Source: Entomortierella parvispora E1425 (lineage: Eukaryota > Fungi > Mortierellomycota). Taken from it: a DNA stretch of 64,000 nt. This document shows, piece by piece, positions 5,152 to 63,181 of this stretch; position 1 is the stretch's first letter, and each line of letters starts with the position of its first letter. The position numbers and the translations under genes were made by a program. Below the pieces are notes generated by a model. It made no database searches and was not told where the DNA came from. It saw nothing but the letters and a program-made list of their open reading frames with translations. The DNA lies in contig BQFW01000012.1 of assembly GCA_020891255.1 (NCBI GenBank), positions 992,001 to 1,056,000 of the forward strand. The letters run 5' to 3'.

Positions 5152-5234
5152 CCGATCCCAGGGTCTCTTTCTCACATCCTCCTATGTGAGAGCAAGCCAG
5201 TGAGTGTCTCTGGTGGGCTGATCCCCATATCCTA

Positions 5235-6400: not shown

Positions 6401-6629
6401 TGTAACAGGAATACGGTGACATCACGCGATGTGTACCTACAAAAGCTAGAAACTTGCAATATAATAAAACTCACTTCTTGTCTCCACTCCACCCTCGATA
6501 CTCCTATTGCATGGTAGCAAAGGTTTTCGATCCACTGACCTCACTGACCCACTGACCCTCCGACACACTTACACCCTGGACCCCCTCGTATCCCTCTTCG
6601 ATCAACTCTCCCTCGACAATTCACCCAAC

Positions 6630-11346: not shown

Positions 11347-11472
11347 AAGGGGAAGGTGTAACAGGAATACGGTGACATCACGCGATGTGTACCTACAAAA
11401 GCTAGAAACTTGCAATATAATAAAACTCACTTCTTGTCTCCACTCCACCCTCGATACTCCTATTGCACATGC

Positions 11473-13285: not shown

Positions 13286-14323
13286 TGTGATGTTGTCTAA
13301 AGTAAGTGTAGTCTAACGTCAGCAAAGGCTGGAGGTGAAAATGATAACGAAAAGAATAATAACGAACAAAGCTCGCTGCTTACATATGATAGGGACTTTG
13401 CTCTCTGTGCCACAAGGATCAAGCACAGCACTGCTATATGATCAGATACAATCTCGAGAGAATGAACTGGATAGACAGGAGGAGGAGAATGAGCAACAGG
13501 ATCACGATGTAAGCAGGAACGAAACTGAAAGGAGACTAATAAGGACATACCAATGAGCTAAGCACGTCCTAATGGTAACCAAACAGGAGAATAAACAACT
13601 ACGGAGGCGAACACTAGGTACTATACTAACTAATAACAACAACAAGGGAGGATTGAAGGGATCTAATCAGTAAGAGCAAGGCTAGAAGTATTCTATCAGG
13701 GAAAGGGGACAAGGCCGCCTAACTGAGGGTTCAGGAGGGACTCGAGGGAAGGCGACGAGAAGATAAGGGAGGTTCCCAAGCACCAGTTAAGGCCTCAGGG
13801 TGCCCAAGCGCCAGTTAAGGCCTCAGGGTGGGATGCCAAGATCGTACAAGTCCACTCAAAAGAGACAAGACATTGTTGGTACCTCGTAAGTGAGCAAGGA
13901 CACGGAGAACGGGTTGGCCGAGGTTCCTGACGGGACTTGTCGAGGACGGGGAAGATCGTAACTTGTGAGTGTACAAGGTCGATCAACAGAACGCAATAGG
14001 TCTGTGATATCCAAAGGTAGGGGGGGGAGGAGGTTTAGACTAGCTACTAATAGTCTCAGCAATCGGAATTAAGGCGTCGAGCTTGCTGCTGCTGCAAAGG
14101 GGATATCGGGCAGGAAGGGGGGGATGTATGTTTGTGTTCTGAAGGGTTCAACAAAAGTGTACTGGCAGGAATCGTAAAGGAAAAAGGCAACCAGGAGCAA
14201 AATGGATTTTGCTCCCTTCTTTATAGAAAAAAAAACTGAAACTAAACAAAATAATAAATGCTACTGAAAATATATCTCTACTCCGATGGATGTGGACCGG
14301 GACTCCACATCTACTACACCACA
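13286..14323 (-). repeat. 5' LTR of B1
   Basis: Direct repeat of 4115-5151, followed (element sense) by a 13-nt spacer and TGGTGGAGAACCTGGG. Confidence 0.95.
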
Positions 14324-14327
14324 ACGT

Positions 14328-15129
14328 TCAACACTCCAGGGCGATAAACGACCTTGAATGTATAATCCAGAATGGTTTCCTGCCATGCCGTCAACATTGA
14401 GTTCATCTCCTTTTGCGTGTGCATAAAAGTCAAAGCACGATGGTCAGTAAAGAGCGTGAAACAACGACCCCACAGGTAATAATGAAGCTTTTTTAACGCA
14501 AAGACAATGGCCAAAAGCTCACGCTGCGTGGCGGAATAATTCCTTTCACTTGGTTGCAATGAGCGTGCAACAAATGATACGTACCGAATATTCTTCGGTT
14601 CATCTTCTCCTCCTGGTAGCTGGTACAGTACTGCTCCAATGCCATAGTTCGATGCGTCCGTGGCCACATACTGTAAAATGGCTGACTGAAGTCTGGGAAA
14701 TGTAAAATTGGCGCTTGCACCAATAAGTTTTTTAAAGTGTTGAAGCACTTCAACTGGAGTTTGTTCAGCGTGAACGTTCCTGGTTCATTTCTCAGTGCAT
14801 CTAATGGTGCTGCTACCGTGCTGATTAATGGGACGAATTCTCTAAAGAAATTAAACGTTCCCATATACGACATTACCTGCTTGCCTGTCGTAGGTGCCTT
14901 CCATTCATCGATGTTCGCCAATTTGTTGGGGTCAACTCTCTTCCCATTGACGTCAATGATGAATCCCAATAAGGCCACCTGAGTGCTGTAAAACCTGCAC
15001 TTGTCTCCGTTGATGATAAGATTCGCCTCTGTCAGTCTCTCGATGACAATCCTGACATGCACAGCGTGCTCCGCCTTGTTCTTTGAAGCTATCAGGATAT
15101 CATCAATGAAATTCCTAACGAATTTTAGA
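14328..15129 (-). pseudogene. pol: RT C-terminal half and RNase H of element D
   Basis: FIDDIL, ATDASNYGIG and ELLAIV motifs; 5-bp insertion at 14669-14675. Confidence 0.92.
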
Positions 15130-16905
15130 TCCCCCAAACAAGAAGGCAACACGGATTTCGTGACCGTCTTTTTGGTGCAATTTGATTGGTTATCGCTAAG
15201 TCATGTGACCATCCCGTTGCAATCAAACAATCAATCACACAAATGCAGCTTACTTACACCTCCGTCTTTTACACCTCCGTCTTTTACACCTCCGTCTTTT
15301 TTTTTATAGATTTATATAGACTATTATAATACATATTTTACATATTCGTTATATAATATTTTCCTTGGCTCCTCATTCTTGAACTTCCTTATTATGCATG
15401 CATGCATGCTAATTAACAAGTACAGTGTACACCTCCGTCTTTTTTTTTATCAAGTTTAATATGTATAATATTCGTTTTATATCTAATTATTAAATTAAAA
15501 AGAAATTCACGGGGGGGTTTTTTTTTTTTCGTTTTTCTGTTACCCTGTTACCATTTCCGGCCATCTATTCTTCCTCACTCCCACTCTCACTCCCTCTCTC
15601 CGCCAGTATTTCCTCTTGCCTCTGCTCCTATCTCCCTCTCTCACAGGCCCATGTCCTTTCTGTCTAGGCACCAAAGCCGGAGCGTTTGTAAGGGCAGATG
15701 ACGGCCATGCCATGCCACCCAGATGACGACCAGATTAGAGTCAGCCACTAGATGGCCACCAGATGATGACCCATGCCAGCCAGATGATGGCCAGATAACG
15801 GTCAGCGCCAGGCAGATGGTCACCATCTGACCTGTGCCAGCAAGATGATGGCCCATTACAGCGAGATGGGGGGCAGATGACGGTTAGCGCCAGCCAGATG
15901 GCGACCAACTCTCCTGTGCATGCAAAATGGACGCCAGATGACGGTCAGCGCCAGGCAGATGGCCACCATCTGGCCTGTGCCAGCAAGATGATGGCCCATT
16001 AAAGCGAGATGGGGGGCAGATGACGGTTAGCGCCAGGTAGATGGCGACGAACAGACCTGTGCCAACAAGATGGCGACCCATGCCAACTCAAGATGGCGAC
16101 GAACTGTCCTCTACCAGCAAGATGATTGACCTGCGTCTACCAGATGACGGTCAGCGCGCAGTTAGATGTCCTGTTATAACAAGTTGATTGACATGCGCCT
16201 CTCAGATGACCGCAATGAGGGGGGGACAAGGACAAGGACAAGGACAAGGACAAGGACAATGACGTGGCAACTGTTAAGGTAACTAAGCGTCCTTCGCTGC
16301 CTTCCATCTCTACTCGATACCAGCCAGACAGCTTACATGTAACGGCTCTTTCCAATTGATTGTCACTCTCAATGCTGCTGTCATATATCAGAAGAGATAA
16401 GATAGGAGTGTGAAAACTACCGCTTTTTTCTCCACCACTTATCACTTCCGTCTATTCAGCGTGGCACTAGCGGCAGATAGGGGCAAGGATAGGGAGGTAC
16501 AGGAAGAAAGCAGAGGACGCGTATTACTTTGAAGAAAAGAAAGAGCAGGTAGGATTGATTTTTTGAACATGGAAGCACCGTGCGACTCGAGTGTTCCGGA
16601 ATATCTCACATTCTTTTGTTTTTCCCTTTCCATAGTCCATCCGGTGGAGTACCATCTCTCTCTGCCAGTGTTTCCTCCTGCCTCTGCTCCTATTTCCCTC
16701 TATCTGTTGGTGCTCAAGTAACTTTCTAAGAGCCACAGGCCCATGTCCTTCCTGTCTAGGCATCAAAGCTGCAGCGTTTATAATAGCAGCAATAGAGGTA
16801 TGTGCCTGGACTGGCAACGGTTCCTTATTTTTGCTGTTTCTCACTGTTGACCACTTGAAATTGACGCGCGCACACTTTGCTCTGTCGGGGCAGCGGCAAT
16901 TAAAC

Positions 16906-16942
<37 letters not shown>

Positions 16943-19015
16943 GTTTAAGCGCTTTACCTCATCATCCTTTCTACCAGATGTTCTGCAAATGACCTGCGTC
17001 GATCACATGGAAGCCAGATGGCGACCAACTATCCAACTATCCTGTGCCAGCAAGATGATTGACCTATGTCGACCAGATGACGGTGTGGTGTAGTAGATGT
17101 GGAGTCCCGGTCCACATCCATCGAAGTAGAGATATATTTTCAGTAGCATTTATTATTTTGTTTAGTTTCAGTTTTTTTTTTTTCTATAAAGAAGGGAGCA
17201 AAATCCATTTTGCTCCTGGTTGCCTTTTTCCTTTACGATTCCTGCCAGTACACTTTTGTTGAACCCTTCAGAACACAAACACACATCCCCCCCTTCCTGC
17301 CCGATATCCCCTTTGCAGCAGCAGCAAGCTCGACGCCTTAATTCCGATTGCTGAGACTATTAGTAGCTAGTCTAAACCTCCTCCCCCCCTTACCTTTGGA
17401 TATCACAGACCTATTGCGTTCTGTTGATCGACCTTGTACACTCACAAGTTACGATCTTCCCCGTCCTCGACAAGTCCCGTCAAGAACCTCGGCCAACCAC
17501 TTGTCCGTGTCCTTGCTCACTTACGAGGTACCAACAATGTCTTGTCTCTTTTGAGTGGACTTGTACGATCTTGGCATCCCACCCTGAGGCCTTAACTGGC
17601 GCTTGGGCACCCTGAGGCCTTAACTGGTGCTTGGGAACCTCCCTTATCTTCTCGTCGCCTTCCCTCGAGTCCCTCCTGAACCCTCAGCTAGGCGGCCTTG
17701 TCCCCTTTCCCTGGATAGAATACTTCTAGCCTTGCTCTTACTGATTAGATCCCTTCAATCCTCCCTTGTTGTTGTTATTAGTTAGTATAGTACCTAGTGT
17801 TCGCCTCCGTAGTTGTTTATTCTCCTGTTTGGTTACCATTAGGACGTGCTTAGCTCATTGGTATGTCCTTATTAGTCTCCTTTCAGTTTCGTTCCTGCTT
17901 ATATCGTGATCCTGTTGCTCATTCTCCTCCTCCTGTCTATCCAGTTCATTCTCTCGAGATTGTATCTGATCATATAGCAGTGCTGTGCTTGATCCTTGTG
18001 GCACAGAGAGCAAAGTCCCTATCATATGTAAGCAGCGAGCTTTGTTCGTTATTATTCTTTTCGTTATCATTTTCACCTCCAGCCTTTGCTGACGTTAGAC
18101 TATACTTACTTTAGACAACATCACAACGGCCAGCCCTCAGCCAGATGTCCTGTTGTAATAAAACAATGAGAGGGGACAAGGACAAGGGCAACTAATAAGG
18201 TAACTAAAACGCCTTTCGCTGCCTTTCATCTCTACTCGATACCAGCCAGATAGCTTGCCCTGTCTAATTGTCAGGCACCAGGTGGTCAAATACTGTAATC
18301 TTTTCTGATGACCTTTTCTTTTTGTAATGGTTCTTTTCAATTGATAGGCAATGCCTCTGTCATTTACAAAGCTTCCATCGTCTATCAACATTTCCTCACT
18401 GGACATGAAAAATTCGACTTGAAGAGATAAGGATAGGAGTATGAAACTACCGCTTTTTTTTCTACTACTTATCACTTCCGTCTATTACTTGGTGGCGCTA
18501 GAGGTACTGTAAGTAGGGGCAAGGACGGGGGCACAGGAAGAAGGCAGAGGATGCGAATTATCAAAGGAAACGTAGTGGCTATTAAACTCGCCTTGATTCA
18601 AGGCTGGCATGCATTCGCCTTACTGTTGGTAGTAGAGCCACCAAAAGTGGGGCATTGTGCGGTATCCAATAATCTCCGCTTCGCATCATGTAGGTAAGTA
18701 ACATGAAAGTGCCAGTAACCAAATGCCAAAGCAAATGTTACAAGAGAGGTTGATTCTACTCATCGACAATATGAAATAAATCACAGTATAAATTTGAACA
18801 AGTATAATGTGGTGCCACGAAGACCCGTGGCGTGACCCACGGGCACATGGCTACGCGTTAAATGTTTGCTTAAAATAAAAAAACTATAATAGCTGATTAG
18901 TCTAGGTTTATTAATAATATAAAAATGATAAAATGAAGCCTTCAATAAAATATTATCGAAAATCAGATGCCATCGTCTTGATTGGGTACCGCGGCGAAGC
19001 TGCGGGTGCCGCTAG
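15130..19015 (+). mobile_element. Non-autonomous Helitron (no RepHel ORF) carrying a solo B LTR
   Basis: 5' TC, 3' CTAG, subterminal hairpin CCGCGG-CGAAG-CTGCGG (18989-19005). Inserted between A15129 and T19016 with no TSD; removing it restores CTT GGA GAT CTA AAA TTC (LGDLKF) of D RT. Confidence 0.93.
17084..18125 (+). repeat. Solo LTR of family B
   Basis: Full B LTR with TSD ACGG at 17080-17083 and 18126-18129. Confidence 0.96.
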
Positions 19016-19512
19016 TCTCCAAGAATTCTACTCATTCCTCTTTGAAACAATGACGATAACGGTTTGAGTCCGAAAGGCGCCTTCTTAAACATGTATTGAA
19101 CTCCTCCATGCATGAATGCTGTCAAATTTCTGTCTGCTGCATGAATTGGTAGCCTGTGGTATGCTTGTCTGAGATCAATCGTCGTGAAAACTTCGTTGCC
19201 TCCCGCAAAGTTCATAATATCTGATATCAGTGGGACAGGGAAATTGTCATCCGGTAAATAGGCGTTTAACGGCCTTGGATCCAAGCATACACGATACAGT
19301 GTTTTGTTCCCTTCCAAATCCTTTTTTGCTGCGAGCGTCAAAGTATTGTTGTATCTGTTTCCAGCTGGTGCTAACATGATCACATCGTCCTTTATCCATG
19401 CTTCCACTGCTGCATCCAGAATTGGAACCTGCGACGCTGCAAATACTCGTGGTCTTGTATAAAGTTCTACTCCTTCTGGTACTGCTAAAAATACCTTCAT
19501 TTCTGGTATCGG
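19016..19512 (-). pseudogene. pol: RT N-terminal half of element D
   Basis: YRVCLDPRPLN, IDLRQAYH and APFGL RT motifs. Confidence 0.92.
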
Positions 19513-24106: not shown

Positions 24107-24118
24107 TCGATAAAAAAA
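24107..24118 (-). promoter_or_regulatory. Atypical primer-binding position of D: TTTTTTTATCGA
   Basis: Abuts the 5' LTR end and lacks TGG. Complementary to LTR sequence TCGAT(A) (24152-24157) plus oligo(A). Confidence 0.6.
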
Positions 24119-24290
24119 TGGGATATTTTGGGCTCTCACTTACAATATGACTATCGAGACAAGAAGAAGGATCTTTATGTTCTGCCCTCGCACTCCTTTG
24201 ATAGGGGAGTGCGAGGGTGGCTTGCTACTAAACTAGGTTACTAAAATAAACATCCCTATTAATACACTTCAAGGCCCACGATATGCCACA
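24119..24290 (-). repeat. 5' LTR of element D (172 bp)
   Basis: TGTGGCATAT...ATATCCCA. A near-identical solo copy with TSD at 61611-61782 defines the ends. Confidence 0.94.
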
Positions 24291-24856
24291 TATAGTATCC
24301 GCTAGGCCAGACGCTTCTAACAGAAGATCAACCTTGTACGCATAGAGGTGGATATCGGCAAATGTTGCTGAATCCAAAGAGAAAAGCTTGTTCATCGCCT
24401 CAGCTTGCAGGAGTTCGATCGAAACAGCTCTTGGATACACTTCTCGACTGGAATCCAAGTGTTGATGGAGTTGTAATCGTAGTACGGAGGTGACTCTGTC
24501 TCAATCACATTGTCCATCTGGGAGGCTAGGTCCTTGCCCATTTGCTTGAGCATGTCTTCGAGCAACTTTACTTCGATACCAGCCTTGCGGAACGCCTTCA
24601 TCATGTACTGGCCCGCCATGATGTCGAACAAACTGCCCAGCTGGATCTTGTAAAACTCGGAGAACTCACGCATGAACTTGTTGATCGTACGAACAATCTC
24701 CATGGCATCAGTGCTGGCTTGGAAGTTGAGCTTGAGTTAAGGCTTATCATCGAAGTTTATCGGAATCACTCTGGAGAAGTCGATCTTCTCACTGTCCTTG
24801 AATACAGGAACGGCTTTCTCCTTCAAACGCCTGATGTCAATATGATACAAGTTGGA
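24291..24856 (-). pseudogene. Middle part of the gag-like ORF of element I (interrupted by H on the right and D on the left)
   Basis: The frame continues from 59764-59274 across the TTGGA TSD (PFNNSN|LYHIDIRR); contains a stop and a frameshift. Confidence 0.7.
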
Positions 24857-25088
24857 TGCAATAGTAAAGGCCAAGGGAAGAGCACGAAGATTGAATGATG
24901 TTTATTGATATGAAGTCCGGGGTATTTATACTAAAGGTTGTGGTGGTGGCAATGGTGGCAATGGTGGTAGTGGTTGTAGTTGACCCTTTGTGGCTTTGCT
25001 GTGAGTGAAGGCGCTGCACGGTCAGTCTGATTTGACTGTTGCACGAGGTCTATTTGTTTGCATCCTTCCCCTCTAAAAAAAAAACGGC

Positions 25089-27696: not shown

Positions 27697-27925
27697 TGTA
27701 ACAGGAATACGGTGACATCACGCGATGTGTACCTACAAAAGCTAGAAACTTGCAATATAATAAAACTCACTTCTTGTCTCCACTCCACCCTCGATACTCC
27801 TATTGCATGGTAGCAAAGGTTTTCGATCCACTGACCTCACTGACCCACTGACCCTCCGACACACTTACACCCTGGACCCCCTCGTATCCCTCTTCGATCA
27901 ACTCTCCCTCGACAATTCACCCAAC

Positions 27926-28846
27926 ATGGACCCCGCGACACCGTCATTCAAATTCCCTCATCCAACACCGTTCAACGGCAAGCGCGACGGATTCTCTGTT
28001 CTCGGTTTTCTGAAACGCATGACCTTTTTCTTCGATGGCGCTGGAATTGCCGAATCTCGCAAGGTCGGGGTTACCCTTGCCTTTGCCGGCGATGAGGTTA
28101 TCGGCTGGTGGGCACTCTTAAACAAGCCATCCGACACCTCATTCCCGGATTTCAGCGAGCTCCTTGCCACCGAGTTCAGTCCTGCGAAGTTTAAGGAGCA
28201 CATTCTCGCCCTCACAATGCAAATGAAAATGACACTACCATTGAACATCTCCAACGTCATGGCCTATATTACCAAAGCCCGTGAATACCACCTGCTCCTC
28301 CAGTCTTACTACGCCGACAACGCAGTTCTCAACGATACTATCCGTACTGCCTTTCTCAGTGGTGCACCTACTCAGCTTCGCCAGATGCTGGAAGTGGCCA
28401 TTGTTAATGCAGGCAACGACACCATAGATCTGCCCAGACTCTTCAAGGCCGCGGAGGAGTTCGGTCGTATCTTCCACACTGGAGACCCATCACTCGGTGC
28501 CAAAGCACTGGCTGCCTCGGGATCCTCTGCTGGTATCACCGACCCCAACGCAATGGAAGTGGACAATATTCATATCCAACTCAACAATATCCATAAGCAA
28601 CTCGGCACCCTTCACCGCTCCTTACAGAACCGCCCCACCAACGGTACTAACAACCCTTCTCGAGATCGCCCCGCACCCCTGACCGCCGCCGACCGAGAGT
28701 ACCTTGTACGTAACGGTGGCTGCTTCCGCTGCCGCGAATTGGGTCACATCAGTCCCAATTGCCCTAAGTACGGCAACGGCAGCCGAGGAATTAATCAAGT
28801 AACCGCGGGTGAATCCCCTGATTCGGGAAAAGCCTCCGGCAACTAG
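27926..28846 (+). CDS. gag: Gag of A2
   Basis: Protein identical to A1 gag. Confidence 0.92.
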   Translation: MDPATPSFKFPHPTPFNGKRDGFSVLGFLKRMTFFFDGAGIAESRKVGVTLAFAGDEVIGWWALLNKPSDTSFPDFSELLATEFSPAKFKEHILALTMQMKMTLPLNISNVMAYITKAREYHLLLQSYYADNAVLNDTIRTAFLSGAPTQLRQMLEVAIVNAGNDTIDLPRLFKAAEEFGRIFHTGDPSLGAKALAASGSSAGITDPNAMEVDNIHIQLNNIHKQLGTLHRSLQNRPTNGTNNPSRDRPAPLTAADREYLVRNGGCFRCRELGHISPNCPKYGNGSRGINQVTAGESPDSGKASGN

Positions 28847-31800
28847 GGTCGGTCCGGACCCCAGTTGTCGAAACTGTAGCCAACAACCCTGAGCTAAGTA
28901 CCTCAAATAAAACTTCACTTGATTCTACACCTCAGAAACATGACTCCAATCATGACAAGCGAACTCACATCCACGATGCTCTGGTTGTTCTATCGGACCG
29001 AAACCAAAACCAAACCAAAAAACCTGTTGCCTCGCCCGCTCCAGTTGCCCTGTCCGCTCCTCTACCTAGATCCTCCGATACAGATGAACCGGACCCTCTC
29101 GCTGTACCGCCGGCACCTAGTGTACCTCTGTCCAAAAGTCAGTTGAAGAAGTTGAAGCGTCGTGCGATTCGCCTACACGAATTCACTGTCCAAAAGGCAG
29201 AGAGCCAACTGCTCACTTTCATCGGTTCTGTCAATGGCCACGCTGCCAGAATCCTGATTGATGGTGGTGCAGAAGGTAATATTATCAGTTCGTCTTTTCA
29301 AAAGCGACACCAGCTCCTCCGCACTGAATGCTTGCCCATCCCCATCCTCCTCCCCAATGGCTCTTCCTCCCTCACATCACACACCGTCCCCATCACCCTC
29401 AACCGCAGCGACTACTCCGATTCGCTCAACCCTATTCTCTATCCTCTCAACAAATACGACCTCATCCTTGGCAAACCCTGGCTCACCAAAGTTAACCCTT
29501 GCATCAATTGGCGCACCAACGATCTTCATTTCACTCACAATGGAATCGATGTCAAATGGAGCTGCCGCGGCTTCAAGGCCGATCACATCCAAAGCCGCAC
29601 CAAAGGACTCCTCCTCACACACATGCACTTTCATTCCATGGCAACCCTGCCCGGCTCGGAGGTGTTCCTGGCCCTTATTCGCAACACCCCAGAGCCCTCT
29701 GAAGAAACTGACCAACCGCGTACAATTCCCGATATGACCCCCAGAGGTGCGGTCCATTGTCATGGAAGAGTTCGCTGATGTCTTTCCGGAGAAACTCCCG
29801 GACGGCCTGCCCCCAGACCGTGGTGATGCTATGAAGATCGAGACCGACCCGACAGCCGACCCACCCTTCCGCCCTGTCATTAGACTTTCAATCGCCGAGC
29901 TTGACGAACTTCGCAAACAACTGGACCAATTGCTAGCAGCAGGTTTTATCAAACCCAGTACCTCTCCCTATGGCGCCCCCGTGCTCTTTGTGCGGAAGAA
30001 GGACGGCACACTCCGAATGTGCGTCGACTACCGTGGCCTCAACAAGATCACCAGGAAGAACAGACACCCGTTGCCCCGTATCGACGAGCTACTTGACCGC
30101 TTCCGTGGAGCACGCTATTACTCCAAGTTGGACTTGTTATCCGGTTATCATCAGCAGCGTATCTTTGAACCACACACACACAAGACTGCCTTCCGTTGTC
30201 GCTATGGTCACTTTGAATTCAATGTTGTTCCCTTTGGCCTTACTAACGCTCCTGCTTCGTTCTCCAATATGATGTTGCGAGTACTCGATCCAGTCTTGGA
30301 CAAATGGGTTGTCGTGTATCTCGACGATCTGTTGATCTACTCCAAGACAAAGAAAGAACACCTGCAGCATCTCCGAAGCGTCCTGGCTCTCCTCCGCAAG
30401 AATGGTCTGTACGCGAAATTGAGCAAGTGCTCCTTCATGCAAGACGAAACTGAATTTTTGGGCCACACCATCACCAAGGACGGGATCAAAACATCGGCCG
30501 GGCTCAGCAAAGCCATCAGTGACTGGCCCACCCCCAAGAGCACAAAGGACGTCCAGCAATTTTTGGGGCTTGCGCAATTTTATCAACAGTACGTATCGGG
30601 CTTTGCAGGGATTGCCCTCCCTCTCTCTTCCCTCCTCGCCAACAACACTCCCTTCAAATGGACCGACGAACAACAATCTGCATTCCTTCAGCTCAAACGC
30701 GCCATCTGCTCCGCCCCCGTCCTCCGCATCTTCGACCCTGATCTCTCACCTTTGTCGAAACAGATGCATCCGGTTTCGCCATCGGTGCAGTGCTGCTGCA
30801 GACTGACCGGGAAGGGAATACCCATCCCATCGCATTCACTTCCAGGAAAATGCAGTCAGCTGAGCGGAACTACCCTGTCCATGAGCAGGAACTGTTGGCT
30901 GTCATCCATGCGCTCCGCACTTGGCGCTACTACCTCGATGGAACCAAGTTCAGCGTCCACACCGACCACGCCACCCTCCGCCACTTCCCCCACACAGCCC
31001 AAACTCACTCGTCGACAGGCTCGCTGGATGGAGTTGCTTCAGGAATACGACTTTGACTTCAAGTACAAGCGAGGAGTTGACAACATCGTCCCAGACGCTC
31101 TCTCCCGACGACCGGACTACCGCGAGCCTGACCCTGTTGAGCTATACAACCTCAGCGTCTCCCTGTCCCCGGACGTCCGTGACCAGCTTGTCCAGGACTA
31201 CAACGACGATCCTCGACTTGGACCCATCTACAAGGATTGCCTGGATGGGAAGGTTGCCAATGGATATTCATTCCAGAACAACCTCCTCTACTTTACCCGA
31301 CGTGGAGCAACCACCCTGGCCATCCCTCGGCACTCCCCGATCCGCCTCACTCTCTTGCACGACGCTCACGACTCTGCCACTGCTGGACACTTTGGTTTTC
31401 AAAAGACTTACGACAACCTGCGCCGTTTCGTATATTGGCCCCACATCGCCAAGGATACCCAGCAGTATGTAGCAACCTGCGAGAAGTGTCAAAGGAACAA
31501 GGACTCACAGGATCGACCAGCTGGACTCTTGCAACCGCTACCCATTCCTTCGCAACGTTGGGAGGTAGTCACCATGGACTTCATCGGCCCTCTTCCGCCC
31601 ACAGCTAGAAATTTTGACGCCATCACAGTGTTTGTCGACAAGCTGACCAAGCAAGCTCACTTCGTCCCCAGTACTACCTCTGCCACAGCCGTCGACGTCG
31701 CCCACCAGTTTTTTGACAACATCTTTAAGCTGCATGGCACACCAACATCCATCATCTCGGACCGCGACACTCGATTCACTAGTAGATTCTGGCAAGAGTT

Positions 31801-32642
31801 GCACAGGCTAATGGATGTCAAACTTGCACTGTCAACCGCCTACCACCCACAGACGGATGGGCAGACAGAGGTTATGAACAAGACGCTGAAGACTATGTTG
31901 AGAGCGTTTATTGACAACAAGCAGTCTAACTGGGACCAGCTCCTTCCGTCACTGGAATTCGCCTATAACAACGCTGTCAATGCATCCACGGGATACTCGC
32001 CGTTCTTCCTCAACTCTGGCCAGCACCCTCGTCTCCCCCACCGCTCTCCTCGGTAAACCCAGCAGCTCAGTCCCCACTGTCGATACCTTCCTGACTGAGC
32101 AGGCGACCACCCTTGCCCTGGCCCAGGATGCTCTGCAGCGTGCTCAGGATCATCAGGAGCAACAGGCAAACAAGCGACGACGGGATCACAAGTACAAGGT
32201 TGGCGATAAGGTCCTGCTGCGTGCCACCAATATCACCATCCCTGCCGACAGTATCAGACCAGCCGATAAACTTCGACCTCAATTCCTTGGCCCGTTCACA
32301 CTTTTGGAGCAACACTCACCTGTCACCTTCCGCGTCGAGCTGCCACCATTCTACAAAATCCATGACGTCTTCCACGTTGATACCTTTCGACCCTATTTGC
32401 CGTCCCCGGAGTCACTCGGCATTCGAGCTCCTGCCCCCGTGGATCCCACTGTAATTGACGGCGAAGAGGAGTATGAAGTGGACGAAATTTTAAAGTACCG
32501 CTTCTACCGCAGACAACACCAGTTCCTAGTGTCATTCAAAGGCTACGGCAGAGAAGCTGACGAATGGCTCCCAGTAAGCAACTTGGACAACTGCATGGAC
32601 TTGGTCACAACCTTCAAAGAGCAGCACGGTATCATTTTTTAA
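28825..32642 (+). CDS. pol: Pol of A2 with indels
   Basis: The -1 frame from GGGAAAA runs directly into the protease ORF 29143..29778; RT, RH, IN and chromodomain as in A1. Confidence 0.9.
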
Positions 32643-32763
32643 AAGGGGAAGGTGTAACAGGAATACGGTGACATCACGCGATGTGTACCTACAAAAGCTA
32701 GAAACTTGCAATATAATAAAACTCACTTCTTGTCTCCACTCCACCCTCGATACTCCTATTGCA

Positions 32764-33836
32764 GGGGCACCGAATGGCGAAATGCTGGGGGAGATAAAGC
32801 CTTTGTGGAGGAGGTCTTGCAGTTGTCGCTGGAGCTCATCAAGTTCAGCCATTGATAGGCGGATGACTGGTCGGACAGGTGGGTCGGCGTTGGGGTCGGT
32901 ATCGATGTGGATTTCAGTGCCGCGATCTGGGGGAAGTCCTGGTGGGAGGTCATCGGGGAAGACATCGGGGAACTCAACGTGTACAAGGTGGCGGATGGCA
33001 TTTGGGAGTGGTTTGGGAGTAGGGGTTTGGTCTGGAGTTTGGTCTGGGCTGGTGTTTGTGTCGGTAGGGGTGTCGGTGGGGGTGGGGGCGAATTTGACGT
33101 GGGCGAGGTAGATCGTGTGAGAGGGGTCTTGGGCGGTAGCAATGAAGTTAATGGCGGAGAGTAGGCGAGTGGTGTTCTTCTGTTTTTGTTTGGCAGGGGT
33201 TGAGAATCCAGTGCAAGTCCAGTGGGTGTGTACTCCATTGTGTTCGAATTCGACGTCATTGGTGCGATAGCTGACACGAGGATCGATGGCGGTCAACCAT
33301 GGTTTGCCAAGGATAAGGTCATATTTTCGTAAGGGATACACGATGGCTTCGATGTTGTCGGAGTAAGTGCCACGCTTGAAGTCGATGGAGGCAGTGTGGT
33401 GGGTGAGGGTTGCGTTACCATTGGGGAGAATGACTGGGATGGGGTCCCCTTCTTGGAGGCTGATTTTGTTGGCACGGCAATAGCTCTGACTGATAACGTT
33501 TCCTTCCGCACCACCGTCGATGAGAGTGCGGGCTGGGCGTCCGTTGAAAGCGGCGGTGAAGGTGAGGAGTCGGCGGGAGTTCCGGAAGAAGGTCTGGAAT
33601 GATAGTAGTCGGATTGGTCGTGTTTTGTGGGGAGGGGATGAGGGTGGTGCTTGGTGTTCAGGAGTGGTGGTGGGCTCAAGGAATTTTTGGATGGACTCTT
33701 TTAGATCGTGGACACGCAACAATGGGACTTCAAAAAGATTTGTATTCTTTTGAGACGTGCTACTACTAAAACTAGTCTGTTGGTCTTTGGTTTGGGCGGA
33801 ACTATCCTTTTCTAATTCTCGCCCTGAGCGTTTCCC
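32764..33836 (-). pseudogene. pol: Protease and RT start of H
   Basis: [10 protein letters not shown] motif; open -1 frame from G GGA AAC (33830-33836). Confidence 0.92.
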
Positions 33837-53490: not shown

Positions 53491-54526
53491 TGTGATGTTG
53501 TCTAAAGTAAGTATAGTCTAACGTCAGCAAAGGCTGGAGATGAAAATGATAACGAAAAGAATAATAACGAACAAAGCTCGCTGCTTACATATGATAGGGA
53601 CTTTGCTCTCTGTGCCACAAGGATCAAGCACAGCACTGCTATATGATCAGATACAATCTCGAGAGAATGAACTGGATAGACAGGAGGAGGAGAATGAGCA
53701 ACAGGATCACGATATAAGCAGGAACGAAACTGAAAGGAGACTAATAAGGACATACCAATGAGCTAAGCACGTCCTAATGGTAACCAAACAGGAGAATAAA
53801 CAACTACGGAGGCGAACACTAGGTACTATACTAACTAATAACAACAACAAGGGAGGATTGAAGGGATCTAATCAGTAAGAGCAAGGCTAGAAGTATTCTA
53901 TCCAGGGAAAGGGGACAAGGCCGCCTAACTGAGGGTTCAGGAGGGACTCGAGGGAAGGCGACGAGAAGATAAGGGAGGTTCCCAAGCACCAGTTAAGGTC
54001 TCAGGGTGCCCAAGCGCCAGTTAAGGCCTCAGGGTGGGATGCCAAGATCGTACAAGTCCACTCAAAAGAGACAAGACATTGTTGGTACCTCGTAAGTGAG
54101 CAAGGACACGGAGAACTGGTTGGCCGAGGTTCTTGACGGGACTTGTCGAGGACGGGGAAGATCGTAACTTGTGAGTGTACAAGGTCGATCAACAGAACGT
54201 AATAGGTCTGTGATATCCAAAGGTAAGGGGAGGAGGTTTAGACTAGCTACTAATAGTCTCAGCAATCGGAATTAAGGCGTCGAGCTTGCTGCTGCTGCAA
54301 AGGGGATATCGGGCAGGAAGGGGGGGATGTGTGTTTGTGTTCTGAAGGGTTCAACAAAAGTGTACTGGCAGGAATCGTAAAGGAAAAAGGCAACCAGGAG
54401 CAAAATGGATTTTGCTCCCTTCTTTATAGAAAAAAAAACTGAAACTAAACAAAATAATAAATGCTACTGAAAATATATCTCTACTCCGATGGATGTGGAC
54501 CGGGACTCCACATCTACTACACCACA
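53491..54526 (-). repeat. 5' LTR of B2
   Basis: Full B LTR, 1036 bp. Confidence 0.95.
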
Positions 54527-54530
54527 CTGG

Positions 54531-57223
54531 TCGATCCTGTGAGTCCTTGTTCCTTTGACACTTCTCGCAGGTTGCTACATACTGCTGGGTATCCTTGGCG
54601 ATGTGGGGCCAATATACGAAACGGCGCAGGTTGTCGTAAGTCTTTTGAAAACCAAAGTGTCCAGCAGTGGCAGAGTCGTGAGCGTCGTGCAAGAGAGTGA
54701 GGCGGATCGGGGAGTGCCGAGGGATGGCCAGGGTGGTTGCTCCACGTCGGGTAAAGTAGAGGAGGTTGTTCTGGAATGAATATCCATTGGCAACCTTCCC
54801 ATCCAGGCAATCCTTGTAGATGGGTCCAAGTCGAGGATCGTCGTTGTAGTCCTGGACAAGCTGGTCACGGACGTCCGGGGACAGGGAGACGCTGAGGTTG
54901 TATAGCTCAACAGGGTCAGGCTCGCGGTAGTCCGGTCGTCGGGAGAGAGCGTCTGGGACGATGTTGTCAACTCCTCGCTTGTACTTGAAGTCAAAGTCGT
55001 ATTCCTGAAGCAACTCCATCCAGCGAGCCTGTCGACGAGTGAGTTTGGGCTGTGTGGGGAAGTGGCGGAGGGTGGCGTGGTCGGTGTGGACGCTGAACTT
55101 GGTTCCATCGAGGTAGTAGCGCCAAGTGCGGAGCGCATGGATGACAGCCAACAGTTCCTGCTCATGGACAGGGTAGTTCCGCTCAGCTGACTGCATTTTT
55201 CCTGGAAGTGAATGCGATGGGATGGGTATTCCCTTCCCGGTCAGTCTGCAGCAGCACTGCACCGATGGCGAAACCGGATGCATCTGTTTCGACAAAGGTG
55301 AGAGATCAGGGTCGAAGATGCGGAGGACGGGGGCGGAGCAGATGGCGCGTTTGAGCTGAAGGAATGCAGATTGTTGTTCGTCGGTCCATTTGAAGGGAGT
55401 GTTGTTGGCGAGGAGGGAAGAGAGAGGGAGGGCAATCCCTGCAAAGCCCGATACGTACTGTTGATAAAATTGCGCAAGCCCCAAAAATTGCTGGACGTCC
55501 TTTGTGCTCTTGGGGGTGGGCCAGTCACTGATGGCTTTGCTGAGCCCGGCCGATGTTTTGATCCCGTCCTTCGTGATGGTGTGGCCCAAAAATTCAGTTT
55601 CGTCTTGCATGAAGGAGCACTTGCTCAATTTCGCGTACAGACCGTTCTTGCGGAGGAGAGCCAGGACGCTTCGGAGATGCTGCAGGTGTTCTTTCTTTGT
55701 CTTGGAGTAGATCAACAGATCGTCGAGATACACGACAACCCATTTGTCCAAGACTGGATCGAGCACTCGCAACATCATATTGGAGAACGAAGCAGGAGCG
55801 TTAGTAAGGCCAAAGGGAACAACATTGAACTCAAAGTGACCATAGCGACAACGGAAGGCAGTCTTGTGTGTGTGTGGTTCAAAGATACGCTGCTGATGAT
55901 AACCGGATAACAAGTCCAACTTGGAGTAATAGCGTGCTCCACGGAAGCGGTCAAGTAGCTCGTCGATACGGGGCAGCGGGTGTCTGTTCTTCCTGGTGAT
56001 CTTGTTGAGGCCACGGTAGTCGACGCACATTCGGAGTGTGCCGTCCTTCTTCCGCACAAAGAGCACGGGGGCGCCATAGGGAGAGGTACTGGGTTTGATA
56101 AAACCTGCTGCTAGCAATTGGTCCAGTTGTTTGCGAAGTTCGTCAAGCTCGGCGATTGAAAGTCTAATGACAGGGCGGAAGGGTGGGTCGGCTGTCGGGT
56201 CGGTCTCGATCTTCATAGCATCACCACGGTCTGGGGGCAGGCCGTCCGGGAGTTTCTCCGGAAAGACATCAGCGAACTCTTCCATGACAATGGACCGCAC
56301 CTCTGGGGGTCATATCGGGAATTGTACGCGGTTGGTCAGTTTCTTCAGAGGGCTCTGGGGTGTTGCGAATAAGGGCCAGGAACACCTCCGAGCCGGGCAG
56401 GGTTGCCATGGAATGAAAGTGCATGTGTGTGAGGAGGAGTCCTTTGGTGCGGCTTTGGATGTGATCGGCCTTGAAGCCGCGGCAGCTCCATTTGACATCG
56501 ATTCCATTGTGAGTGAAATGAAGATCGTTGGTGCGCCAATTGATGCAAGGGTTAACTTTGGTGAGCCAGGGTTTGCCAAGGATGAGGTCGTATTTGTTGA
56601 GAGGATAGAGAATAGGGTTGAGCGAATCGGAGTAGTCGCTGCGGTTGAGGGTGATGGGGACGGTGTGTGATGTGAGGGAGGAAGAGCCATTGGGGAGGAG
56701 GATGGGGATGGGCAAGCATTCAGTGCGGAGGAGCTGGTGTCGCTTTTGAAAAGACGAACTGATAATATTACCTTCTGCACCACCATCAATCAGGATTCTG
56801 GCAGCGTGGCCATTGACAGAACCGATGAAAGTGAGCAGTTGGCTCTCTGCCTTTTGGACAGTGAATTCGTGTAGGCGAATCGCACGACGCTTCAACTTCT
56901 TCAACTGACTTTTTGGACAGAGGTACACTAGGTGCCGGCGGTACAGCGAGAGGGTCCGGTTCATCTGTATCGGAGGATCTAGGTAGAGGAGCGGACAGGG
57001 CAACTGGAGCGGGCGAGGCAACAGGTTTTTTGGTTTGGTTTTGGTTTCGGTCCGATAGAACAACCAGAGCATCGTGGATGTGAGTTCGCTTGTCATGATT
57101 GGAGTCATGTTTCTGAGGTGTAGAATCAAGTGAAGTTTTATTTGAGGTACTTAGCTCAGGGTTGTTGGCTACAGTTTCGACAACTGGGGTCCGGACCGAC
57201 CCTAGTTGCCGGAGGCTTTTCCC
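54531..57223 (-). pseudogene. pol: PR-RT-RH of A3
   Basis: Near-identical to A1/A2; truncated by the B2 insertion at DSQDRP|AGLLQP. Confidence 0.92.
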
Positions 57224-58122
57224 GAATCAGGGGATTCACCCGCGGTTACTTGATTAATTCCTCGGCTGCCGTTGCCGTACTTAGGGCAATTGGGACTGAT
57301 GTGACCCAATTCGCGGCAGCGGAAGCAGCCACCGTTACGTACAAGGTACTCTCGGTCGGCGGCGGTCAGGGGTGCGGGGCGATCTCGAGAAGGGTTGTTA
57401 GTACCGTTGGTGGGGCGGTTCTGTAAGGAGCGGTGAAGGGTGCCGAGTTGCTTATGGATATTGTTGAGTTGGATATGAATATTGTCCACTTCCATTGCGT
57501 TGGGGTCGGTGATACCAGCAGAGGATCCCGAGGCAGCCAGTGCTTTGGCACCGAGTGATGGGTCTCCAGTGTGGAAGATACGACCGAACTCCTCCGCGGC
57601 CTTGAAGAGTCTGGGCAGATCTATGGTGTCGTTGCCTGCATTAACAATGGCCACTTCCAGCATCTGGCGAAGCTGAGTAGGTGCACCACTGAGAAAGGCA
57701 GTACGGATAGTATCGTTGAGAACTGCGTTGTCGGCGTAGTAAGACTGGAGGAGCAGGTGGTATTCACGGGCTTTGGTAATATAGGCCATGACGTTGGAGA
57801 TGTTCAATGGTAGTGTCATTTTCATTTGCATTGTGAGGGCGAGAATGTGCTCCTTAAACTTCGCAGGACTGAACTCGGTGGCAAGGAGCTCGCTGAAATC
57901 CGGGAATGAGGTGTCGGATGGCTTGTTTAAGAGTGCCCACCAGCCGATAACCTCATCGCCGGCAAAGGCAAGGGTAACCCCGACCTTGCGAGATTCGGCA
58001 ATTCCAGCGCCATCGAAGAAAAAGGTCATGCGTTTCAGAAAACCGAGAACAGAGAATCCGTCGCGCTTGCCGTTGAACGGTGTTGGATGAGGGAATTTGA
58101 ATGACGGTGTCGCGGGGTCCAT
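57202..58122 (-). CDS. gag: Gag of A3
   Basis: Protein identical to A1/A2 gag. Confidence 0.92.
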   Translation of the reverse strand: MDPATPSFKFPHPTPFNGKRDGFSVLGFLKRMTFFFDGAGIAESRKVGVTLAFAGDEVIGWWALLNKPSDTSFPDFSELLATEFSPAKFKEHILALTMQMKMTLPLNISNVMAYITKAREYHLLLQSYYADNAVLNDTIRTAFLSGAPTQLRQMLEVAIVNAGNDTIDLPRLFKAAEEFGRIFHTGDPSLGAKALAASGSSAGITDPNAMEVDNIHIQLNNIHKQLGTLHRSLQNRPTNGTNNPSRDRPAPLTAADREYLVRNGGCFRCRELGHISPNCPKYGNGSRGINQVTAGESPDSGKASGN

Positions 58123-58356
58123 GTTGGGTGAATTGTCGAGGGAGAGTTGATCGAAGAGGGATACGAGGGGGTCCAGGGTGTAAGTGTGTCGGAGGGTCAG
58201 TGGGTCAGTGAGGTCAGTGGATCGAAAACCTTTGCTACCATGCAATAGGAGTATCGAGGGTGGAGTGGAGACAAGAAGTGAGTTTTATTATATTGCAAGT
58301 TTCTAGCTTTTGTAGGTACACATCGCGTGATGTCACCGTATTCCTGTTACAGCAGG

Positions 58357-58913: not shown

Positions 58914-59273
58914 GGTGTTATCGCTGGAGTCTTGGGGAGGTCAGGAATTCAAAGTATCGTAGGATCGTGGAATGCAGTGTGATCAGGTGGAGTCTGAGAG
59001 GTTCGAGGGTCTTGTCTGTGGCGGTGGAATCGGAGGGGTCCAGGATCGAGGAAACCTTTGCTACCAATGCAATAGTAAAGGCCAAGGGAAGAGCACGAAG
59101 ATTGAATGATGTTTATTGATATGAAGTCCGGGGTATTTATACTAAAGGTTGTGGTGGTGGCAATGGTGGCAATGGTGGTAGTGGTTGTAGTTGACCCCTT
59201 GTGGCTTTGCTGTGAGTGAAGGCGCTGCACGGTCAGTCTGATTTGACTGTTGCACGAGGTCTATTTGTTTGCA

Positions 59274-59764
59274 TTGGAGTTGTTGAAGGGAATGGCGTAG
59301 GCACCGGTGGTTTCAACTGATGGAGTCGTGGCGGCTGGCGTGGGCGACGACATGGGCGTCTCGCTTCGACCTTTCAACTGTATGTCCACTGGCTCTCGAG
59401 GACAGAACTCCTTCCAATGATGGTGTGCCAAGTCCATGTCTCGACCTAACATCTTGAGCTTGCGGATAGTGGCCTCGATCTGAGCATCGCAGTCGTTGAT
59501 GATCCTGTCTCTTTCCGCAGGATCCAAATTTGCATCCTGGTCAAGTTCTTTGGTCTTATCTCGGAGGGCGTTCTTTTGCTTTAAATAGTATACCAGCAGT
59601 TCGTTCCGCTCCAGCGTGACCTTATCCAGCTCTGCCTTCATTATGTCAGCCATAGAATGAACTTCTGTTGAGATAGAAGCGGCAGCATCATACTCCTGCA
59701 TAGGAACGTCTTCGGACAGAGGCGCTGGTGGGCGCTCTGGACTTGCATCGACCTCGGCACTCAT
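59274..59764 (-). pseudogene. N-terminus of the gag-like ORF of element I
   Basis: First ATG ORF about 460 nt (excluding the solo B LTR) after the 61273-61484 LTR; coiled-coil-like. Assigned by position only. Confidence 0.65.
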
Positions 59765-59809
59765 AAGGTAGCACTATTGATGCGAATGAATACAAAAGGA
59801 GCGTTACGC

Positions 59810-60850
59810 TGTGGTGTAGTAGATGTGGAGTCCCGGTCCACATCCATCGGAGTAGAGATATATTTTCAGTAGCATTTATTATTTTGTTTAGTTTCAGTTT
59901 TTTTTTCTATAAAGAAGGGAGCAAAAATCCATTTTGCTCCTGGTTGCCTTTTTCCTTTACGATTCCTGCCAGTACACTTTTGTTGAACCCTTCAGAACAC
60001 AAACATACATCCCCCCCTTCCTGCCCGATATCCCCTTTGCAGCAGCAGCAAGCTCGACGCCTTAATTCCGATTGCTGAGACTATTAGTAGCTAGTCTAAA
60101 CCTCCTCCCCCCCCTTACCTTTGGATATCACAGACCTATTGCGTTCTGTTGATCGACCTTGTACACTCACAAGTTACGATCTTCCCCGTCCTCGACAAGT
60201 CCCGTCAAGAACCTCGGCCAACCAGTTATCCGTGTCCTTGCTCACTTACGAGGTACCAACAATGTCTTGTCTCTTTTGAGTGGACTTGTACGATCTTGGC
60301 ATCCCATCCTGAGGCCTTAACTGGCGCTTGGGCATCCTGAGGCCTTAACTGGTGCTTGGGAACCTCCCTTATCTTCTCGTCGCCTTCCCTCGAGTCCCTC
60401 CTGAACCCTCAGTTAGGAGGCCTTGTCCCCTTTCCCTGGATAGAATATTTCTGGCCGTGCTCTTACTGATTAGATCCCTTCAATCCTCCCTTGTTGTTGT
60501 TATTAGTTAGTATAGTACCTAGTGTTCGCCTCCGTAGTTGTTTATTCTCCTGTTTGGTTACCATTAGGACGTGCTTAGCTCATTGGTATGTCCTTATTAG
60601 TCTCCTTTCAGTTTCGTTCCTGCTTATATCGTGATCCTGTTGCTCATTCTCCTCCTCCTGTCTATCCAGTTCATTCTCTCGAGATTGTATCTGATCATAT
60701 AGCAGTGCTGTGCTTGATCCTTGTGGCACAGAGAGCAAAGTCCCTATCATATGTAAGCAGCGAGCTTTGTTCGTTATTATTCTTTTCGTTATCATTTTCA
60801 CCTCCAGCCTTTGCTGACGTTAGACTATACTTAGTTTAGACAACATCACA
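59810..60850 (+). repeat. Solo LTR of family B
   Basis: TSD ACGC at 59806-59809 and 60851-60854. Confidence 0.96.
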
Positions 60851-61260
60851 ACGCTATGTCTCTTGAATACAGATAGTGAACGCTAACCAGTCAATCAAGT
60901 TGGTGGTTTAGACGTAAACAATAATATTTTGTTTTGGGACTCAGCCAACAAAAACAAAATCAGTGATATGGACGACAACAGTTGCTGGACTCACTGCAGT
61001 GGATCAACCTCTGAACAATGGATCCACAGTAACAATGGTGTTCGAACGATATTGGAGCACAAAGGAATGATCTAAGAAAAGGGGCACGTAGGACAAGCCG
61101 TTGCGTTCTTTCCGATCAACCTGCGCGGGTGGATACGACTGAGAGGAGATCCCAATTACTGTACACTACACAACAGAGAGGATGATCGATTCTCAAAGGA
61201 TGGATGATCAACCGGACTGATGGATGTTAATGGTAATGGATGGATGCCCACTCTTAAGTA

Positions 61261-61272
61261 CGTTGAAAAAAA
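61261..61272 (-). promoter_or_regulatory. Atypical primer-binding position of element I: TTTTTTTCAACG
   Basis: Abuts the LTR end and lacks TGG. Complementary to LTR sequence CGTTG(A) (61323-61328) plus oligo(A). Confidence 0.58.
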
Positions 61273-61484
61273 TGTGATATTCTCGTGGGGTCTTACTTAC
61301 AAACAATAACAGTCAATAGAAGTCAACGAGAACAAGAGAGGGTTTTATTAAAGACAGGCACCAGCAGGTCTTTTATAGTCCGGCTGGTGCCAGTCACGGA
61401 AGACTCTTAAACATCGGAGAAGTAAAAAAGGACTGCGACTCAGGACTGGCGTCCTGAACCCCATACCTAGTGCTAAACATCACA
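61273..61484 (-). repeat. Putative 5' LTR of element I (212 bp)
   Basis: TGTGAT...ATCACA inverted termini, TATAAAA and AATAAA signals; interrupts a MULE transposase frame at 61485. The partner LTR is not in the window. Confidence 0.78.
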
Positions 61485-61610: not shown

Positions 61611-61782
61611 TGGGATATTTTGGGCTCTCACTTACAATATGACTATCGAGACAAGAAGAAGGATCTTTATGTTCTGCCCTCGCACTCCTTTGATAAGGGA
61701 GTGCGAGGGTGGCTTGCTACTAAACTAGGTTACTAAAATAAACGTCCCTATTAATACACTTCAAGGCCCACGATATGCCACA
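61611..61782 (-). repeat. Solo LTR of family D (172 bp)
   Basis: TSD TCGCT at 61606-61610 and 61783-61787. Confidence 0.95.
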
Positions 61783-62462
61783 TCGCTTTCCTCACATATA
61801 TTGAAGGCGAGTACTTCACAACTGATCGCCAGAAACTGTGGATGAAGGCATTCCGAAGCGGCATTTACTATGGAAGCATGGACACAAACAGTTATGTGGA
61901 ATCCTGGCACAACCACCTTAAGTCTCATATTCTGCGAGGTCATGCTCGGATTAGGGGCGATCGGTTGATCTACCTTCTCTCCCATTCGATCATTGCTGAC
62001 AAGAGGCAAGATGAAACAGAGGCTGACCTCCATCTCGGTAAACGGTCCAACGGTGAGATTAGGGACATCATACATCAAAGAGAGGTTCAAGCCATGGACA
62101 TCGATTTCCTCCGCAGTAAAGTTGTCCGTATTCCTGACTCAAACGCTCCAAACAAGTGCCGGTACTCAGTCTTTTCGTTCACGAACGATGGAGCCAGCTT
62201 TGAAGTCTCTGTCAATGATAAGAACATGATCATGGCATGTTCTTGCCCATATTTCATCCGGTGGCGACGAGTTTGCAAACATATTCTCGCCGTTTCGATG
62301 GTGGACCGTCACATTCACATGCCTCCTGGGTACAGTTTCCATTTCTCAAGCAAGAGCTCCAATTCTTATGTCAGTACCAATACTCCGGCTGTTGTCCCCG
62401 CAGAGGCTGCTGTGAGTCCAGAAGCTGTTGATCTTGATCTCGAAGGACAATTGGACCACCAG

Positions 62463-62530
62463 CAGGATGAGCCGGACGAGCAGGACCAGCAGGACCAGCA
62501 GGACCAGCAGGACCAGCAGGACCAGCACCA
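62463..62530 (+). repeat. Coding 9-bp tandem repeat (CAGGACCAG, Gln-Asp-Gln)
   Basis: DQQDQQDQQDQQDQHQ in ORF 61842..62714. Confidence 0.85.
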
Positions 62531-63148
62531 GGCCGAGATTCAAAACCGATTGAACTTGGAGGTAAACTCCGTGCATGACTCAGTCAAATCATATATTCGT
62601 TCAGCCAAGTGCACACCGGAGATGCTTTCTACAATGAAGAAAGCACTGGAGATAGCTCAGGGACTAGAAACGCCAATCGACACTCGATGGAATTCCACCC
62701 GTAATCGGCAATAAGCAGAGACATGTCAATTGGGATGCTCTGTTAATGACTGAGCGCCTGCAGCAAATACACAAATGGACAGAATAATGAATAAATATGT
62801 TTTGTGGCCTTGTAAGATTTCTAAGAGAGGAGTTGGGAAGAATGTGGTGGAGACAGGCCACACACTCACACACTGGCGTGGGAAGGATGTGGGAAGTGGT
62901 GTTGCGGGACTCGTGTTGCGTTGCGTGGTGTGTGGTGTAACCCAAAAAAAAAAAAAAAAAAAAAAAGAACCGCTGTCCCCCTGAAGGAAGAGTGAGTGGA
63001 TGTGACATCTATGTAATCACCATGGAGTTTCTGTCGTTTGTCGTCGAAATGTCGAGATGTCGGCAACTTATCAACTTATCAACTTGACCTTGTCCAAAAA
63101 CGTCGTCTGCAACTTTGTTGCAGGACTGGTCACAGGTAGAATAGGTCT

Positions 63149-63181
<33 letters not shown>

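Follow-up and report, generated by a model that had tools for sequence, protein, structure and literature searches.

Covarying T-run junctions in fungal chromoviruses and possible priming of reverse transcription from the poly(A) junction

Known priming systems and the junction of element I

The mode by which reverse transcription is started is a defining trait of retroelement lineages, and to our knowledge only a few such modes are known among LTR elements, namely priming by the 3' end of a tRNA, by an internal tRNA fragment, or by the 5' end of the element's own transcript, as in Tf1. In Tf1 and Tf2 of Schizosaccharomyces pombe, the first 11 nt of the RNA pair with a site next to U5 (Levin 1995-1998, as given in PMC7175516), and according to the same source a cut by RNase H in the RNA duplex makes the primer end of Tf1. 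In Skipper, a Dictyostelium chromovirus, the left LTR is immediately followed by a polypyrimidine stretch, and TGG is absent; its authors proposed an unknown kind of self-priming and deemed plain poly(A) unlikely (Spaller et al. 2016, PMC5006619). In SM-Tcn1, a Tcn1-like chromovirus of Selaginella, neither a tRNA site nor a 5' self-priming site was found. A conserved thymine-rich stretch extends from its 5' LTR to gag, and the mechanism was described as 'unclear' (Novikova et al. 2010, PMC2864245).

The window examined in this study, i.e. the whole stretch of 64,000 nt that was analysed, contains on its minus strand the 5' LTR of an element designated I, and the genome of Entomortierella parvispora (38.9 Mb, 20 contigs) was searched. 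The LTR (61484-61273, TGTGAT...ATCACA, 212 bp) ends in ...GAATATCACA with its last base at 61273, and about 12 genomic copies gave matches ending exactly at both limits. Three full-length copies of 6.65 kb each were found, with LTR pairs that were 100% identical within each element, 5-bp target duplications (CATTC, TGACC, and ATGTG), and a polypurine tract, GGAGGGGGAGTC, preceding the 3' LTR. A sequence-only reading of the window had taken 61273-61484 for an LTR; the ends found again on other genomic copies, together with the target duplications of the full-length copies, established that it is one. The coding region contains, in Pfam order, Asp_protease_2, RVT_1, RT_RNaseH, Integrase_H2C2, rve, and a C-terminal Chromo domain, and the reading frame is unbroken over 1723 codons in one copy and divided into four frames in another. 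Since protease, reverse transcriptase, RNase H, integrase, and chromodomain are all present, element I is a Ty3/gypsy chromovirus (Metaviridae), and a young one; it met both membership tests for this group, one on LTRs, target duplication, and polypurine tract and the other on domain order. The window's own copy is fragmentary and disrupted by nested insertions. Its leader holds a 1.05-kb solo LTR at 59806-60853, its gag is broken near codon 103 by a 34-kb composite insertion bounded by LTRs of 208 bp each (24856-25063 and 59067-59274), and no 3' LTR belonging to it turned up on the contig.

On the minus strand, T7 (61272-61266) and CAACG (61265-61261) directly adjoin the LTR, exactly as had been read from the sequence before, and we propose this stretch (61261-61272) as the primer-binding site of I. 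T7-CAACG was found after the 5' LTR in all three full-length copies, and neither the other 5' LTR copies in this genome nor relatives at 84% and 66% protein identity depart from it. The complementary word, CGTTG followed by A, lies inside the LTR at 61323-61328 (minus strand), where it is proposed to be the end of R and the poly(A) addition site; it was unique within the scanned 75-nt LTR stretch (90 to 15 nt before the LTR end). The cut predicted after this word falls 51 nt short of the LTR end and 26 nt past the start of AATAAA (61344-61349, minus strand), which is probably the poly(A) signal. A U5 of about 50 nt with a GTAAGT motif (61273-61322, minus strand) is inferred from the predicted cut alone. 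The previously stated pairing of ...CGUUG-A7 with U7-CAACG at 12 of 12 positions also holds, with AATAAA at 61349-61344 and CGTTGA at 61328-61323. A candidate tRNA site further downstream in I (TGGGCATCC, 22 nt after the proposed site) was rejected, as its TGG is not conserved in the relatives L061 and L063.

Element D, which is nested in I by insertion at 24290, has a 5' LTR of 172 bp (24119-24290, minus strand) with 14 genomic copies showing these limits, four of which are solo copies with 5-bp target duplications. Its site consists of T7 and ATCGA (24107-24118, minus strand), and the complementary TCGAT followed by A (24152-24157, minus strand) lies in the LTR, at distances of 28 nt from the preceding ACATAAA and 34 nt from the LTR end. 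The T-run was T7 in two 5'-LTR copies of D and T8 in the third, and a further D-type junction on C8 also had T8. After 3' and solo D LTRs, only flanking DNA without T was observed, as after the solo LTR at 61611-61782 (minus strand), which has the TCGCT duplication on both sides and no T-run; the T-run is thus outside the LTR. The LTRs of I and D had been described as lacking obvious similarity, yet they are not unrelated: their U5 ends align over 37 nt at 81%, and both share a layout of hairpin, A-rich hexamer, CT-rich stretch, TCTCG-like word site, and a U5 ending in AATATC(A/C)CA. As formerly noted, the 5-mer differs between the two elements and matches the own LTR in each (CAACG/CGTTG versus ATCGA/TCGAT), and because these matches lie at homologous positions, the difference is a true covariation. 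The D copies have LTRs about 99% alike, yet the reverse transcriptase of the only full D copy examined (L047, C15:613908-620702; related observation at 14320-19500 of the window) contains several stop codons. This family may have decayed, or may be non-autonomous and depend on relatives for its movement.

The T-run junction meets the feature test derived from Skipper and Tcn1-like elements, namely a T or pyrimidine run adjoining the left LTR in the absence of TGG, although this is a test of that feature only. Both Skipper and the clade of I have a pyrimidine run after the LTR, whereas an LTR sequence complementary to it was not found for Skipper (PMC5006619). SM-Tcn1 likewise shares a T-rich sequence after the LTR, and no LTR match has been reported for it. 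As in tRNA-primed LTR retrotransposons and retroviruses, the site lies 0-1 nt after U5 and is presumably regenerated during plus-strand synthesis; unlike those elements, the clade of I has no TGG or tRNA complement, and its primer would be family-specific.

Several other features of the window were recorded. A family with 1.05-kb LTRs (TGTGGTGTAG...ACATCACA; 4112-5154, 13286-14337, 17080-18128, 53491-54526, and 59806-60853) continues with CCCGAAGCCAATTTGGTGG, which is neither TGG-first nor a T-run. An open frame at 61800-62715 (plus strand) encodes a SWIM-type zinc-finger motif, CPYFIRWRRVCKH, with a CAGGAC repeat at about 62487-62522, and is likely the remnant of a Mutator-like transposase. 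A pure run of 24 A (62944-62967) and a pure run of 30 T (63151-63180) lie in unique-looking DNA beyond the elements.

Covariation and clade-wide distribution of the junction

A search of the genome with the reverse transcriptase of I revealed several families at 44-59% identity. Relatives were taken from public assemblies, soil metagenomes, and Rhizopus delemar, and the families of this genome were sampled in small pieces at the expected place. In total, junctions were read in 21 elements with 14 different words, comprising five families of this genome (I, D, F2, J, and F3), soil-metagenome contigs, and R. delemar; junction features were tabulated for 20 of these elements, and F3 was read separately. 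F2, present at no fewer than six loci (at least 6), has T7-CAGTGA at the site and TCACTG followed by A in the LTR. J has a C spacer, T7-GACG, and CGTC followed by A, and F3 has T7-AATTG and CAATT followed by A. F3 had been considered an exception with a T8 in the leader that does not adjoin the LTR; this was dismissed when the true LTR border was located 1.4 kb upstream, where the family obeys the rule. As a separate observation, F3 (L115 and L074, C7:626051-628400) has a 1.4-kb leader between the site and gag, which may hold an extra open frame. The relatives added the words CAAGG, CAGGA, AACG, AACGA, GATGA, GTTG, AAGTGA, AGATTG, and AACGGTGA.

The anatomy observed was the same throughout. 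In each of the 21 elements, the LTR is separated by 0 or 1 nt from a T-run of 5-8 and a word of 4-8 nt, no TGG-type tRNA site is present, and the reverse complement of the word occurs in the own LTR, 24-60 nt before the LTR end. The complement is single in that stretch in 20 of 21 elements, J having a second, chance CGTC. The 'exactly seven T' claimed at the outset therefore stands for I and fails as a universal rule, the T-run varying from 5 to 8 across the clade. A pyrimidine-rich stretch precedes the word site in the LTR (21 elements). Among the 20 tabulated elements, an A directly follows the LTR word in 19, and in 15 the predicted cut lies 25-33 nt past the start of an AATAAA-like, A-rich hexamer; no canonical hexamer was found within 35 nt of the predicted cut in the other 5 or in F3. 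A single defective contig (L081) has a (CA)n repeat after the LTR and has lost the site, three relatives (L069, L072, and L090) have no readable 5' junction, and the LTR ends of L071, a tandem array, are undefined. L071 (JGI 3300030617), a relative at 47% identity, has an array period of 7471 bp and an A25-G7 run before gag.

The word matched the own LTR in 14 of 14 families, compared with 12 of 182 pairings with the LTRs of other families, and most of the latter are explained by words contained within other words. When the pairs were shuffled at random 200,000 times, no more than 9 matches were ever reached, and never 14. This covariation is beyond chance and constitutes a clade-wide rule; since the family-specific words always match the own LTR, the primer is expected to be the element's own sequence. 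The proposal that I and D share a mechanism rather than a coincidence is supported by these figures, and the search among relatives for covarying pairs yielded 12 further word pairs, so that all 14 word types of related T-run families carry the matching LTR word. Single compensatory changes between close relatives were among them. Between F2 (TCACTG/CAGTGA) and L103 (TCACTT/AAGTGA), a change of G to T in the LTR is met by a change of C to A in the site, and compensation was also seen between J (CGTC/GACG) and L066 (CGTT/AACG), between F3 (CAATT/AATTG) and L073 (CAATCT/AGATTG), and between the sisters D (TCGAT/ATCGA) and L093 (CAAC/GTTG), whose flanks are nearly identical.

Added together, T-run and word measured 11, 12, or 13 nt in every one of the 21 elements, and longer runs went with shorter words (r = -0.73, p = 0.003, 14 types). 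Such a constant sum is expected from one continuous duplex. The predicted duplex energy was -10 to -19 kcal/mol for the own junction, and averaged -4 to -10 kcal/mol for foreign junctions.

A reverse transcriptase tree of 28 rows included 17 elements whose junction could be read, and all of them fell on one side of a branch with support of 100/99, together with eight further rows without a readable 5' junction. The expectation that I and D would belong to one clade was thus fulfilled, every readable 5' junction in that clade being of the T-run type, and the two elements lie in different subclades of it. On the far side of the branch are two related gypsy families of the same window, with LTRs of 111 bp and 208 bp followed by TGGTAGCAAAGG(T)TTTC..GATCC (6401-11470, 27697-32766, and 55000-58352; LTRs 24856-25063 and 59067-59274); TGGTAGCAAAGG is an initiator-tRNA-type site. 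The trait was retained down to 37% protein identity to I in the survey and 42% over the reverse transcriptase region in the tree, the latter value being that of the R. delemar element, which has a T-run junction with TCGTT as its LTR word. With so distant a carrier in Rhizopus, the trait extends over both Mortierellomycotina and Mucorales.

The LTR of I also contains a hairpin (61357-61391, minus strand; z = -4.6) with a 9-bp stem, GGCACCAGC/GCTGGTGCC, and a loop with TATAAAAG (61377-61370). A hairpin was found at the same place in all 10 T-run families with enough LTR sequence to fold (in addition to I, D at 24185-24217, minus strand, and L061, L063, L064, L065, L066, L070, L073, and L075). 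The stems of 7-12 bp are family-specific and covary between families, CTATAAAAG or a variant of it forms a TATA-like motif in the loops, and about 30 nt separate the end of the hairpin from the word downstream, at the proposed poly(A) site. The hairpin may belong to the promoter or may mark the 3' end for recognition; if the TATA of the loop is the promoter, R is very short.

Further motifs were noticed near the junction. About half of the families carry GTAAGT or GTGAGT, resembling a 5' splice site, in their inferred U5 (61290-61300 and 24136-24146, both minus strand, and L061, L063, L073, L093, and L115). This motif may be a true splice donor, or it may bind U1 and thereby block polyadenylation in the 5' LTR. 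In many family leaders (61230-61255, minus strand, L061, L063, L065, and L067), the site is succeeded by CATCCATCC repeats. A purine block (AAGAG) is often present in the leader and could pair with CTCTT of the CT-rich stretch before the word, forming a possible second helix.

Priming from the poly(A) junction and its rivals

We propose that minus-strand DNA is primed by the element's own RNA, whose R-poly(A) junction would pair with the site. This reading is probable in our judgement; the poly(A) site is unproven, and no RNA data are available. The position of the LTR word resembles a poly(A) site in that a hexamer lies upstream, a pyrimidine-rich stretch precedes it, and an A follows, and that it is the real poly(A) site and the tail the primer is an inference made from these letters. 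Because the site adjoins U5, where the 3' end of a minus-strand primer must sit, the primer would end in 5-8 A that are not encoded by the LTR; as the LTR encodes only one A after the word, these would be added after transcription.

According to this proposal, the genomic RNA would end with the last 4-8 nt of R and a poly(A) tail, and the junction of the two would pair with the T-run and word just after U5, forming a duplex of 11-13 bp. Whether the pairing would occur within the same RNA or with a co-packaged one is a matter of inference only. To place a 3' OH at the U5 border, the tail would have to be trimmed or to remain short. Since poly(A) tails normally exceed 5-8 nt, and hence the T-run, by far, either a short tail or a trimming step, itself inferred and unproven, is needed. 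Trimming would most plausibly be performed by the RNase H of the element, with a cut after the paired A's, similarly to Tf1. Such cleavage of an RNA duplex is known for Tf1 and is only proposed for the clade of I, for which there are no biochemical data. Reverse transcriptase would then extend the tail end through U5 and R, and the predicted joint for I is ...CTCGTTG + A7 + TGTGATATTC.... The strong-stop DNA would stay covalently joined to the RNA that is copied next, with R just upstream, so that the first strand transfer could take place within one molecule, possibly as a fold-back. Plus-strand synthesis would finally copy the primer into DNA, rewriting the site from the R end in each cycle, and we infer that this copying accounts for the perfect matches between site and R end and for their covariation. 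RNA evidence was not obtained: none of the related contigs ended in a poly(A) run, and a genome search with the R end of I and A6 found no R-poly(A) retrocopy, the sole match being in the intron of a host gene.

The word is necessarily present in the 5' copy of R as well, and a stem of 5-8 bp formed with the site in the own RNA would covary too. It is accordingly conceivable, albeit unlikely, that the word of the 5' R and the next A pair with the word after the T-run, closing U5 into a loop, while the T-run is bound separately by an A-ended primer such as the end of any poly(A) tail. Such a stem could also take in the last T, paired with the A that comes after the word in 19 of 20 LTRs, and U5 stems are required by Tf1 and retroviruses (PMC7175516). 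However, the stem would be just 5-8 bp long and would leave unexplained the purity of the T-run, its compensation with the word to a constant 11-13, and the poly(A)-like position of the word. Moreover, an A-tailed primer would still be required, the nearest being the element's own tail beside the same word.

A somewhat weaker possibility, which we doubt, is that a host RNA with an oligo(A) end serves as the primer, or that synthesis starts without a nucleic-acid primer, and that the LTR match circularises the genome for packaging or translation. Priming was not directly observed here, and the reluctance of the Skipper authors to accept simple poly(A) self-priming for a polypyrimidine site (PMC5006619) could be cited in its favour. 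Against this, in every family the match joins the T-run without a gap and is placed exactly at the U5 border, and the family-specific words point to the element's own RNA.

Self-priming from the transcript 5' end as in Tf1 appears very improbable. Tf1 and the clade of I are alike in being of chromovirus type, in lacking a tRNA site, and in the proposed pairing of the own RNA beside U5 with a duplex of similar length (11 versus 11-13), and one related contig (L062) begins at GTTCTCGTTGA, 44 nt after a TATA box, which hints at a very short R, although the library type is unknown. Nevertheless, the Tf1/sushi-type test, in which the whole site is complementary to a contiguous LTR stretch of about 11 nt at the transcript start, was not met: the contiguous LTR-encoded complement, i.e. 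the word and A, is only 5-8 nt long, and the T-run has no encoded partner. In addition, such a primer would leave about six T to be copied into U5, yet no T follows the CA end of 3' and solo LTRs, and on this ground 5' priming was rejected. The primer of Tf1 is the transcript 5' end and is fully encoded by the LTR, whereas the pairing partner in the clade of I consists mostly of non-encoded A's, pointing to the 3' poly(A) junction; unlike that of Tf1, this primer would also remain joined to the whole genomic RNA.

Chance, or an inherited motif without function, could be entertained only because the words are short and some 4-mers recur in other LTRs (the 12 of 182 pairings), and it was tested and rejected on the own matches of all 14 different words, the permutations, and the persistence of the trait over deep divergence.

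Significance of poly(A)-junction priming

The idea that the poly(A) tail of an element pairs with a T-run to begin DNA synthesis recalls the target-primed reverse transcription of LINEs. In LINEs, however, the T-run is the nicked chromosomal DNA that serves as the primer and the tail is the template, whereas in the clade of I the tail would be the primer and the T-run lies in the own RNA. No description of poly(A)-junction priming was found in full-text searches of the literature; the 'novel mechanisms of priming' of which Goodwin and Poulter reportedly wrote in 2001 for Cryptococcus Tcn2-5 could foreshadow it. Whether priming from the poly(A) junction is a fourth mode of starting the minus strand, belonging to an old, Mucoromycota-wide clade of chromoviruses, and may also explain the T-rich or polypyrimidine sites of Tcn1-like elements in plants and of Skipper, is a broader claim on which we consider the balance even.

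LTR finders that seek tRNA-type sites will miss or mis-score such elements, and the rule of a T-run plus the complement of the R end could be used to annotate them and predicts their poly(A) sites. If the proposal is true, it offers a candidate answer for sites published as unexplained, those of Skipper (PMC5006619) and SM-Tcn1 (PMC2864245). It would also explain the co-evolution of the primer site with the R end and provide for a first strand transfer without a jump between molecules, and the element would be independent of host tRNA, using its own tail as the primer.
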